Shown: positions 4,998-61,046 of the stretch, in pieces
Layout of the letters: each line of letters begins with the position of its first letter
Numbering within the stretch: the stretch's first letter is position 1
From: Bugula neritina
Lineage: Eukaryota > Animalia > Bryozoa
Assembly: GCA_964035545.1 (NCBI GenBank)
Contig: OZ037772.1
Location: forward strand, 6,308,889-6,372,888
Direction of reading: 5' to 3'
DNA length: 64,000 nucleotides
Program-made: the position numbers and the translations under genes
Notes under the pieces: model-generated
What the model was told of the DNA's origin: nothing
What the model saw: only the letters and a program-made list of their open reading frames with translations
Databases searched by the model: none

Positions 4998-6004
4998 GTG
5001 TTTCAAAGAAGAATGGATGGTTCAGTTGATTTCTACAGAAACTGGTACAGCTACAAACTGGGTTTTGGTAATTTGAATGGAGAGTTCTGGCTTGGAAATG
5101 ACAAGTTGGTAGCTGCTCTGCAAGCCAATTCTAAGAATGAGTTGAGATTTGATCTTGAAAGTACAACCAATGTACAAGCTTTTGCTGAATACAGCAGCTT
5201 CAATGTTGGTGATGTGTCTACTGGATATACTCTCTCAGTTTCTGGCTATACTGGGACAGCAGGTATGGATTTCAAACTCAGGATGCAAATCTCTGATCAA
5301 TGCCACCATTGCTATTGAGAAAGTAATGCTCTATCCTGTAGTTCATATATATACATAAATGTTACTAAACTGTCATTGAAAAAGTTTGATTAAAATATGT
5401 TTGTTGCAATAAACGGTTTTGAGGTATCATTTAGTTGCAATATATCAACTTTGTGTCAACGCTCCTATATATGATATATAACACATTACTTTATAGATAA
5501 GAAATTTTTGTTATAATTTGCTATTAAATTGTAAATAAATTGTTGCAAGATATTGATTGAGAAGTAATATTATTCTCCCAACTATAATAGTAATTTAGTT
5601 TACATTGAAACATTTCACACTAGGAAGCTACTCAAAGCCTATAGGCTAATATTCAACATTTATAGAAAATCTAAATATAAATTTTAATGAGTGATTGGTG
5701 GTGTTATTCACTCTGTGAAAGTAAGCTTTTGTACAAATGAAGGATTGAATTTTTAGGAGACAGTTTTGCTGCTAATCATAATGGCTTCAAGTTTTCAACA
5801 GCTGATAGAGACTATTCAAGCTCGTGTGCATTGAAATATGTTGGTGCTTGGTGGTATGGAGAAACCTGTCACCATTCTAACTTGAATGGCAAGTACCTGA
5901 ATGGCACTCATACTTCTTTTGCTGATGGTGTAAACTGGAAAACCTGGAAGGGATACCATAATTCTCTGAAGACCACAGAGATGAAATTCCGTGGATATTT
6001 GTAA
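4998..6004 (+). CDS. FReD/ficolin-like gene copy A, partial (exons 3-4 only: 4998-5262, 5757-6004)
   Basis: ag|GTG TTT CAA AGA AGA ATG GAT GGT encodes [29 protein letters not shown]; phase-1 intron gt 5263..ag 5756; last exon [55 protein letters not shown], open to TAA at 6002-6004. No exon 1 or 2 seen in 1-4997. Confidence 0.85.
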
Positions 6005-6557
6005 TTCCCCAAAGTTTGAATAATAGCAAAGCTCAAGCATTGTCATTCATAATTATATGACATAAACTTATTATTTTACTTGTTCATAAATGAATTAAAT
6101 TTTTTTTGTAAAATTGATGCGCCAAAATGTTGTCTGTGTGGCACTTTTGGGTAACATATCTTAAAAAAATAAATTACAAAGTAAACCAGAGGTGTAGTCA
6201 GTTTTAAAATTTACAAATTTAAACGTAAATAAAAGGTTTAAGAGTTGGTTTAGTAAACATAAACATTACAAATTTTTGTCCCAAAAGCCTTGCATGCAGT
6301 TCATCAAAATTGTAGTTTTCCTGCAAAATTTAATAATTAAGTGCTACAACTCTATGCTTATAACATATGTGCTTCTTTTGTCGGATCTTCTGAAAAACTT
6401 TCAGACCGTAACTATTAGATGTTGGAATGCTTATATACACAATGATATATGTATTAAATACATATCCAAAATTTAAACAGAAACAAAAAGAACACAATTA
6501 TTTATATTTAAGCAACAACATTTACTATATAACAGCATAAATAAATATATAGGATAA

Positions 6558-6638
6558 TATATATATATATATATATATATATATATATATATATATATAT
6601 ATATATATATATATATATATATATATATATATATATAT
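6558..6638. repeat. (TA)n microsatellite
   Basis: Directly visible pure TA run. Confidence 0.97.
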
Positions 6639-58500: not shown

Positions 58501-59533
58501 TTCTTTCCAAAACCTTGTCAAAAACGTAAAGCAAACGTAATTTTGATATTTGACTTGTCCAAAAGCTTTAATTTGTTTGCAAGCAAACAAAACAACGAAT
58601 GTTGGTTTACTAACATAATAAATTAATTGATGAAATATTTTACGATGCATTTGCATTGTAATTATACGGAAACAACAAGCATGATGTTGACCTATACAGC
58701 TTAACAACTAGAAAAAACAGTGATCTGTTACAACTGCATGATCTAATATCTCTTGGAATATAAGCAGGCCACACTGGTTTTAGTATTCAAGTGTCCAATG
58801 TGGCTGCCAGGATGTCAACTATAGTGAGTCACATTTGTGTAGTTTATATTCACATTAGCTCTAGTATATGTTTGAGTATAGGCTGTATTCTATATTCAAT
58901 GTTGCTGTGATTTACAAATTATAAATATTTTGTAGTATATAATTATAGTCATTTAGAATAACTAGTGCATATGTTTAGATGTGCCGTGGTTTATATATAG
59001 ATATGTTTTTGTTTTTTCATCCTATATATATTTGATATATTTTGTATTTATCTTTGGGTATACATGCATGAACACTCCAACATCTTATAATTTTTGTTAT
59101 ACAATGTCTCCTAAAGTAGTTTAAATTTTTCAAAACATGACAAAGAAGTATACGTATGTGTATAGGGATATATTTGCAAGACTTAAAAATCAATTTTCAT
59201 CGTTTAATCTACAATTCAGTTTATACAAAATCTTGCAATCAAGCTAAATAATTATTGATATGCTGTATACAATGTGTTTGGTATACACAAAGTTGTAATG
59301 TTTAATCTTACAAGAGGGAGTTTAGAGCCTTGAATTAAAACATTTGTAAATTACATTATTGATCACACTCTTTTTTGTCTTTGCAAATAGTTTTACAAAA
59401 TTTAACTCAAAACTAAAAATCAAGTCACTTTTATTTTGGCTCAAAAGCTTATTTATTTATTTATATAAATGAATGAAACAGTATAAACTTATAGATTCAA
59501 GCTTTGCAATTGCATATATATAAACATAAGGGA

Positions 59534-61046
59534 TTACAAATATCCACGGAATTTTATTTCTGTGGTTTTTAAAGAGTCATTTTGACCTTTCCAGTTTGAC
59601 CAGTTTACGCCATTAGCGTAGGAAGTATGCTTTCCATTCAAGTACTTGCCATTCAAATTGGAAGAATGACACGCGCCATACCACCAAGCACCATTAAATA
59701 TGGTTGCACAGGAGTGAGGGTAATTATCATTGTCTCTATCACGTGTTGAAAACTTTCGTCCATTGCCATGATATGAAAGGCCATCACCTAAAGATTAAAT
59801 ACTTCACTTTCTGAATAATAATGAGCTATTTTCATAAAGTAAATAAAGTTATTGTAATTACTCATGTAAAATCCATATTTTAATATTTTGTGACAATCAA
59901 TTACAGTTGGCCTAGCTAATTTTAAGTAGCTTTTCAGAGTAAAATTTCCTAAAATAAACTAAGTACTCTACTTGGGTAACTATCACCTCTCAATCAATAT
60001 AATGCATCAATTTAGCCATAATATTTTAATGACCAAACATTGTTTTTATTGTCGTTTGTCTTTGCAGTAAAGCGTTATATAGTTGCGAGTTTAAGCAAAC
60101 GTTTTGCACTGCAACTATATAATTTTTGAGCTTTTTAATACAACAAAAGATGTTTAAACCAAAAGTCTTTAAAAGCGTTACCAGCAGTTTAGTAAAAGTA
60201 ATTTTTAAGCCAATAAATGGAGCATTATTGCTATAAAAATTGTGAACAAAAATTAGAAATGTAAGCCTAATTTGGGCAATTGATTCAGTTGCTGTAATCA
60301 GATATTTGCATTCTGTTAGAAATTTATACCTGCTGTCCCGGTATAGCCAGAAACTGAAAGTGTATATCCAGTTGACTCATCACCAACATTGAAGCTGCTG
60401 TACTCAGCATAAGCTTGTTCATTGGTTGTACTTTCAAGGTCAAATCTCAACTCATTCTTAGGATTGGCTTGCAGAAGGGCTACCAATTTGTCATTTCCAA
60501 GCCAGAACTCTCCATTCAAGTCACCAAAACCCAGTTTGTAGTTGTACCAGTTTCTGTAGAAATCAACTGAACCATCCATTCTTCTTTGAAACACCTAACA
60601 ATTAGGTAAAAAGAAAATTTAATTTTATTGGTTAACAGAACTGTATCTCTATTATGCAGTCTCAGGTTCGATATTTGCTATGCAAGTTTGCTTTTATTAT
60701 TCTCCTGGTTGAAAACTAATCTAACGAGTAATATAAATATATGTATCAGAATATGGTAGTAGGGATGAGTGAATGCTATATAATCTGAAAATCAAAACAA
60801 ACATCTTTTTAAACAACCGCTATAATATAACAACAACAGAATATTGATACTAACAGTCCATCCACCTCCATCAGTTTTCTGGTCACAGAAGACATCAAAT
60901 GAGTAGTGTTCCTGCCCTGTTGGGTAGATCTTGTATACACCGCTAGCACCACCATATCCAAGACACAGTAGGTCTAAACATGTTCTGGGTTTGTCATATG
61001 GTTTTGTCTTCATTCTCTCCAAACAATATTCCTCTACATCGCCTTG
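59534..61046 (-). CDS. FReD copy F (exons 61046-60855, 60594-60330, 59787-59534), open; signal exon not in window
   Basis: [35 protein letters not shown]|VFQRRMDGS..|[53 protein letters not shown]; intron-1 homology with copy E stops at 61533. Confidence 0.88.

Follow-up and report, generated by a model that had tools for sequence, protein, structure and literature searches.

Interleaved FReD and PAN-PAN-F-type-lectin-like genes in the bryozoan Bugula neritina: a probable case of joint duplication, reshuffling and decay

Why should genes of two unrelated lectin families alternate along the same stretch of a bryozoan genome? The question is raised by 64,000 nucleotides of Bugula neritina DNA (assembly GCA_964035545.1, 216 Mb in 321 contigs; contig OZ037772.1, here C8:6308889-6372888), hereafter the window, which contains six fibrinogen-related (FReD) loci and five loci for proteins with two PAN modules and a C-terminal F-type-lectin-like domain (P). 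Coordinates are window positions, with negative values and values above 64000 lying in the flanks. Loci were listed from stop-to-stop open reading frames and exon-level tblastn across 264 kb, which reproduced the order and orientations originally predicted from the letters alone: FReD A, P1, FReD B, FReD C, P5(-), FReD D, P2, FReD E, P3, P4(-), FReD F(-). The interleaving is thereby confirmed, far beyond chance, and a unit consisting of a P gene, a (GT)n tract, a locus-specific block of ~2.8 kb and a FReD gene occurs six times in ~150 kb. Very probably, this is an ordinary unstable tandem lectin cluster of ~180 kb (C8 6.19-6.37 Mb) that evolves by birth and death with local concerted evolution. 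The interleaving of the two families is what is new, the process of duplication and decay itself being already well known.

According to this explanation, two independent genes for secreted proteins stand head to tail, a five-exon P gene and, ~2.8 kb downstream, a four-exon FReD-only gene of the ficolin/FIBCD1/tachylectin-5 type (252 aa). A segment spanning both was propagated by direct and inverted segmental duplication, and its copies were next reshuffled by non-allelic recombination and gene conversion, with nonsense mutations, frameshifts, microsatellite-to-microsatellite deletions and mobile-element insertions eroding them. The interleaving would thus reflect how large the duplicated unit is, rather than any demonstrated functional coupling.

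The P gene comprises 354 codons in five exons, begins with a signal-peptide exon of its own and reaches its stop codon just 5' of the (GT)n tract. For the FReD gene, multi-copy alignments revealed a 51-nt signal-peptide exon with a GT donor, ~570 bp 5' of exon F1, so that intact copies have their own ATG, their own signal-peptide exon and canonical splice sites. The stop of the P gene ahead of the (GT)n tract and the separate start of the FReD gene show that these are two transcription units. A single PAN-PAN-lectin-FReD transcription unit might be suspected from the shared strand and the mere ~3.4 kb that separates F1 from the last P exon, but a stop codon ends the last P exon in every copy read, the FReD gene brings its own ATG, signal-peptide exon and donor, and in a copy shortened by a microsatellite deletion the P donor is in phase 1 and the F2 acceptor in phase 0, so the two would not join in frame. 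Such a long gene is already contradicted by the sequence and is considered extremely unlikely.

Joint duplication of the two genes was apparent from self-comparison. A direct duplication pairs 8974-17190 with 31185-40452 at 80-84% identity, the block segments 11637-14821, 18348-21226 and 35528-38800 match one another, and a large inverted duplication occupies the right half of the window (Table 1). The flanks take part as well, with -69708..-58950 matching 8700..22722 at 90-94% and an inverted match connecting -41859..-22733 with 89772..53622. Copies of the block start at 11040, 18048 and 33735, close to the predicted ~11035, ~18045 and ~33618. Six near-full copies of it exist in the genome, all at C8 6.24-6.40 Mb, and the only parts of it found elsewhere are two small embedded dispersed repeats. 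Between the FReD gene and the next P gene lies a 2.4-kb tandem repeat (40738-43072 and 43303-45636; 53858-56196 and 56413-58793), which both arms of the inverted duplication carry and which recurs upstream of the window (-32892..-22733).

The sequence has a GC content of ~30% and abounds in (TA)n and (GT)n tracts, and in a region so rich in microsatellites and repeats the duplications might reflect mis-assembled haplotypes or collapsed or expanded repeats, just as single-base nonsense codons could be sequencing errors. Haplotype duplicates, however, are expected to be nearly identical and collinear, whereas the copies seen here are 4-35% apart, differ in their indels and mobile-element insertions and belong to different 3' lineages. 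This degree of divergence indicates genuine paralogues rather than assembly duplicates, and an assembly artefact is regarded as very unlikely.

The joint history of the two genes was examined by comparing four segments (P gene, block, FReD 5' part and FReD 3' part) across the cassettes K1-K6. The P genes of K1, K2, K3 and K6 are 95.5-96.7% identical, introns included, while that of K5 (P2) shares only ~80% identity with these four and falls together with a different paralogue. For the block, the closest pairs are K1-K5 (94%), K2-K6 (90%) and K3-K4 (87%). The FReD 5' part, from the signal-peptide exon to F2, shows 88-93% identity among all copies, and the 3' part (intron 2, F3 and flank) falls into the lineages {K2,K5,K6}, {K3,u67}, {K1,A} and {D,u7}, with ~64% identity between lineages. 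Only K2 and K6, both situated within a ~19-kb inverted segmental duplication, are congruent in all four segments. Moreover, the identity of K3 to K1, K2 and K6 drops stepwise near 11800, within the block, and at 15982, in the first bases of intron 2. The disagreement between segments, together with these steps, indicates that the cassettes are mosaics produced by non-allelic recombination or gene conversion. As read from the alignments, the 5' half of the FReD gene is homogenised, introns included, while F3, the exon for the putatively ligand-binding P subdomain, comes from old lineages. Congruence of the P and FReD trees, the check put forward by the original prediction and extended here to the block, fails for most cassettes; its co-duplicated cassette holds true in so far as both families were duplicated jointly, but not as a coherent single evolutionary unit.

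One of the rearrangements can be read to its breakpoints. A (GT)n tract was found 3' of every P gene that was read to its 3' end, including copies without a downstream FReD gene. Downstream of the P gene of the sister copy K1, a (GA)n(GT)n tract is joined directly to the sequence that, in the window, follows the (TG)n tract of FReD B intron 1. Both ends of this deletion (-67860..-67609) lie in GT tracts, the counterparts of which are 10781-11013 and 15526-15580, and the deletion removed the block together with the first two FReD exons (signal peptide and F1), leaving the P 3' end ~110 bp 5' of F2. We infer that the (GT)n tracts may promote recombination.

Decay is equally pronounced. All eleven loci listed as genes in the original prediction are present, but most of them are relics or pseudogenes, with 7/11 clearly dead. 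None of the five P copies in the window is intact, and the only complete FReD copies are B and E. An intact P paralogue lies outside the window, at C8:6238123-6240967. The fast turnover proposed for the locus is borne out by these losses, by the direct and inverted segmental duplications, by the deletions and by a 22-kb mobile-element insertion. The latter, 22.3 kb in length, separates FReD F from its signal-peptide exon, is absent in the sister cassette K2 and holds retroelement fragments, including one RVT_1 fragment on the minus strand. Whole-exon dN/dS ratios of 0.24 (F1), 0.12 (F2) and 0.25 (F3) indicate purifying selection on the FReD exons. The decay of the P partner next to intact FReD B and E speaks against the two genes being selected together as one pair.

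This bears on a more ambitious explanation, in which P and FReD are kept adjacent through joint action, for example by way of a shared regulatory block or a heteromeric or sequential recognition complex, and selection in an immune, symbiont or allorecognition system acts on the cassette as a whole. Such a functional module would account for the recurrence of the adjacency in one orientation with a conserved ~2.8-kb intergenic block, for the P genes that also lie upstream of diverged u7-type FReDs, and for the signal peptides of both products. It is at variance with the differing histories of the cassette segments and with the 0/5 intact P copies in the window compared to 2 to 4/6 open FReDs. 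It is also at variance with the distribution of the two families elsewhere. FReDs of the same subtype form clusters on C1 at 23.04 and 23.28-23.37 Mb, where a PAN2-exon search that scored every one of its 75 candidates found no P exon. The P family, in turn, numbers at least 65 copies, mainly at C8 4.7-6.44 Mb and also on C5, C9, C2 and C3, most of which have no FReD neighbour, and interleaving is confined to C8 6.19-6.37 Mb. Since each family also occurs in arrays alone, the linkage is local and not obligate. A related organism shows the same: a 9655-bp contig of JGI metagenome 3300002729 contains three tandem PAN-plus-F-type-lectin-like genes, ~3.5 kb apart, of which one last exon has 88-90% DNA identity to the P family of the window. 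Neither this contig nor a second metagenome contig with P-type genes carries a FReD, and the 65 metagenome FReD loci, at most ~60% identical over the full exon, were without a P exon. On balance, joint action as the reason for the adjacency is considered unlikely.

Some observations nevertheless weigh against the explanation by plain duplication and decay. Same-orientation adjacency of P and then FReD recurs at least seven times, both with B-type and with u7-type FReDs, whose 5' lineages are diverged, and this leaves room for some selective or regulatory advantage of the arrangement. In the young lineage {E, F, u35}, two ~60-bp patches of F3 (39770-39829 and 39890-39949 in FReD E, with homologous sites in FReD F and u35) are 25-27% diverged, as compared to 7-8% in intron 2, and no donor for them was found in the assembly; divergence at three to four times that of the flanking intron is not accounted for by plain neutral decay. 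Finally, the lone nonsense codon of P2 could be a sequencing error or a single allele. Taken furthest, the cassette would be a selected two-lectin module with co-regulated or interacting products, whose microsatellite-bounded parts are shuffled so that a conserved FReD 5' half is newly combined with an old, divergent, ligand-binding F3. If true, this shuffling would give a colonial animal, which has to discriminate self from non-self, a combinatorial recognition system encoded in the germline. We consider this quite improbable.

With the birth-and-death cluster retained as the preferred explanation, the locus opens no new kind of system. Its value lies in a well-resolved, documented case of two unrelated lectin families becoming interleaved, in a phylum with almost no immunogenomic description, and in candidate loci for bryozoan expression and allorecognition studies. 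The case combines a duplication unit of two genes, a microsatellite breakpoint, and divergent, putatively ligand-binding exons of old origin attached to a 5' half that is homogenised. The literature searches made returned no description of a FReD/P pairing, in line with the original prediction, which knew of none, and none of FReD or F-type lectin loci in bryozoans. Annotation should take into account that pseudogenes make up most of the copies and that the first exons of two FReD genes are distant or missing.

The assignment of the loci to the two families was based on Pfam and homology searches run exon by exon, joined exons serving only for reading-frame checks and dN/dS. The families originally proposed were recovered, with Fibrinogen_C for the FReD exons, PAN_1 for the PAN exons and F-type lectin structures as the top matches of the lectin exons. 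Exons F1, F2 and F3 match Fibrinogen_C (PF00147) at E 2e-7, 3e-27 and 8e-27, covering profile positions 2-45, 45-133 and 141-219, respectively, which places the genes in the FReD family. The closest structures to F3 are FIBCD1 (4m7f, E 4e-32), ficolin-2, MFAP4 and tachylectin-5A (1jc9, E 4e-27).

The gene model consists of a signal peptide, ~20 residues and the FReD domain, giving a predicted secreted protein of 252 aa for FReD B and ~252 aa for FReD E, with FReD as the only domain. In this respect the predicted products resemble tachylectin-5, which is likewise secreted and made up of the FReD domain only. When FReD B was aligned to FIBCD1 and ficolin-2, the DRDND, C...CH and Y-A residues were found to be kept, and the position of FIBCD1 Tyr405 is Phe in both FReD B and E. 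The likeness to ficolin, FIBCD1 and tachylectin-5A would thus extend to the DRDND Ca-site motif, the Cys...Cys-His segment and the Y/F-A pocket positions, the aligned residues in FReD B and E presumably having the roles of Ca2+-site and of Cys-Cys/His/Tyr pocket residues. The ficolin class differs in its N-terminal part: the FReD gene model has no Gly-X-Y repeats of a collagen-like region, and instead of a collagen or coiled coil there is only the ~20-aa N-terminal stretch with one extra Cys. A further difference is that pocket and loop positions vary among the window copies and that the Ca-site motif of FReD A is shortened to DRDYSSSCA.

The first exons of FReD A and FReD F are displaced. Exon F1 of FReD A lies outside the window, 5.5 kb upstream (-771..-571), and no signal-peptide exon was found for this gene; that of FReD F is located at 83864-83958 (-), 22.8 kb away and likewise outside the window. 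In the FReD C relic, the start of F1 is fused to the 3' end of an A-like F3 exon. Open frames of 330-370 aa had hinted at intronless FReD copies, which were ruled out since translation shows ordinary introns full of stops.

Among the P genes, P2 has five exons. Its first exon codes for the signal peptide MKLLLACILLMSEFSSISA and the start of PAN1, including its first Cys, and its 354-codon frame is broken by a single TGA at 32213-32215, where the paralogues have a conserved Trp. An upstream open reading frame (MQEKVNCYF...) had been considered as the first P exon and was dropped in favour of the MKLLLACILL... signal-peptide exon. The PAN_1 scores of P2 are 21.9 and 24.6 bits and those of P3 and P4 20.7-29.6 bits, with a cut-off of 21.4, so the matches are marginal, yet they are repeated in every copy and place the modules in the PAN/apple family. 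The signal-peptide exon is absent from P1, and none was found for P3. At the place where the first exon of P1 would be expected, a short stretch on the minus strand (7534-7586) resembles Rfam Hammerhead_1 below threshold (28.3 bits against a gathering value of 34, E 9e-5); at gathering thresholds, Rfam gave no match across the whole window. An insertion in a P2 intron (32391-32500), shared with the paralogue d101, contains a tRNA-like B-box (GGTTCGAACCC) and is probably a tRNA-derived short interspersed element (SINE).

The C-terminal domain of P required profiles. In single-exon searches its two halves match FBP32 (3cqo) at E 1.3e-5 and 3e-3, and the profiles A1 and A2, built from 13 and 21 copies, match consecutive stretches of the 3cqo F-type lectin domain at E 5e-9 and 3.4e-9, with only F-type lectin structures at the top of their lists. 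Further matches were Sm-hPAF (6e-4) and, more weakly, SP2159 (0.12) and AAA (1k12, 0.65) for A1, and eel AAA (E 0.048) for A2, while PF22633 reached only E 0.023 on a single P exon. Because both halves match successive parts of FBP32, F-type-lectin-domain homology is taken as established.

The fucose-binding motif of F-type lectins is HX24RXDX4(R/K), together with a Cys-Cys pair (PMC5712786). In the P copies of the window, the His is replaced by Ala or Val and the Asp by Glu; these copies also lack the Cys-Cys pair, and their closing Arg lies four residues out of place (SLFAT/SLFVT instead of SCxHT; IWDRSEHS.Q..NDRL instead of NRGDCCGERL). The motif His is kept only in the u50/d110/d119 subfamily, outside the window. 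The domain therefore shares with the F-type lectins AAA and FBP32 the match of both halves, but differs in lacking the canonical fucose motif; "F-type-lectin-like" is the accurate label. The two N-terminal PAN modules of P are not in the domain-type figure of the same review (PMC5712786). A protein-library search with the last lectin exon gave 56 matches, mostly short metagenome fragments, without an annotated full-length orthologue. JGI and ENA metagenomes supplied the closest fragments. Among named proteins, a Lingula lectin-plus-PAN protein, the only name that a cluster look-up returned, is nearest to the lectin domain, and relatives further removed carry several PF22633 repeats. From these resemblances we infer that the products may recognise glycans or acetyl groups, and membership in the two families alone would suggest an immune, symbiont or self/non-self role.

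Several features of the cluster have parallels in known systems. The human RCCX module contains several unrelated adjacent genes that are duplicated as a block, which gives rise to partners that are truncated or pseudogenes, to unequal crossing-over and to gene conversion; it differs in genes and organism, and the present locus has more copies, in both orientations. The sea urchin Sp185/333 (SpTransformer) genes are tightly clustered immune-type genes flanked by microsatellites, in which segmental duplications and deletions occur and recombination associated with the microsatellites has been inferred (PMC3091723, PMC5103432). The likeness lies in the (GT)n tracts after the P genes and in the one deletion that runs exactly from (GT)n to (GT)n. 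The gene families are, in contrast, unrelated, and the duplication unit here holds two different lectin genes.

Table 1 Coordinates of the lectin loci, block copies, microsatellites and large rearrangements in the window
Feature	Position	Strand	Details
FReD A	4998-6004	+	F2 4998-5262, F3 5757-6004 open, AG/GT splice sites
P1 pseudogene	8953-10692	+	PAN2 exon with frameshift and ~170-bp insertion; last-exon frameshift
(GT)n microsatellite	10781-11013	.	directly 3' of P1
Block copy K3, intergenic/promoter	11040-13896	+	locus-specific
FReD B	13897-16732	+	intact 4-exon gene: 13897-13947 (signal peptide), 14518-14709, 15688-15952, 16482-16732
(TG)n tract	15526-15580	.	FReD B intron 1
Block copy K4	18048-21225	+	includes FReD C relic; no P gene
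FReD C relic	20528-21225	+	signal-peptide exon 20528-20578 and first 25 F1 codons (21151-21225)
P5 relic	25569-25787	-	last lectin exon only
FReD D	26437-27436	+	5'-truncated: partial F2 26437-26635 without acceptor site, F3 27186-27436
P2	29403-33159	+	exons 29403-29559, 31202-31375, 31581-31850, 32025-32237, 32909-33159
(GT)n-rich microsatellite	33224-33595	.	3' of P2
Block copy K5	33735-37825	+	internal partial tandem duplication, 34175-35518 matches 35724-37155
FReD E	37826-39993	+	intact 4-exon gene: 37826-37876, 38474-38665, 38937-39201, 39740-39993
Inverted duplication, left arm	38014-47600	+	FReD E, 2.4-kb tandem repeat, P3 PAN exons
P3 pseudogene	46909-48498	+	TGA 47047-47049 (PAN1 exon), TAG 47958-47960 (first lectin exon, conserved Trp)
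(GT)n tract	48553-48641	.	3' of P3
P4	51237-51996	-	PAN1 and PAN2 exons only; cut at inner edge of inverted duplication
Inverted duplication, right arm	51251-61498	-	87-93% identical to left arm (38014-47600 vs 61498-51251)
FReD F	59534-61046	-	open exons F1 60855-61046, F2 60330-60594, F3 59534-59787
Mobile-element DNA insertion, start	61533-64000	.	22.3 kb in all, to 83796; within FReD F intron 0

Upstream of the window, a satellite array of ~4.7 kb with a 98-bp period was observed at -103293..-98566, and a related stretch lies at -113663..-112465.

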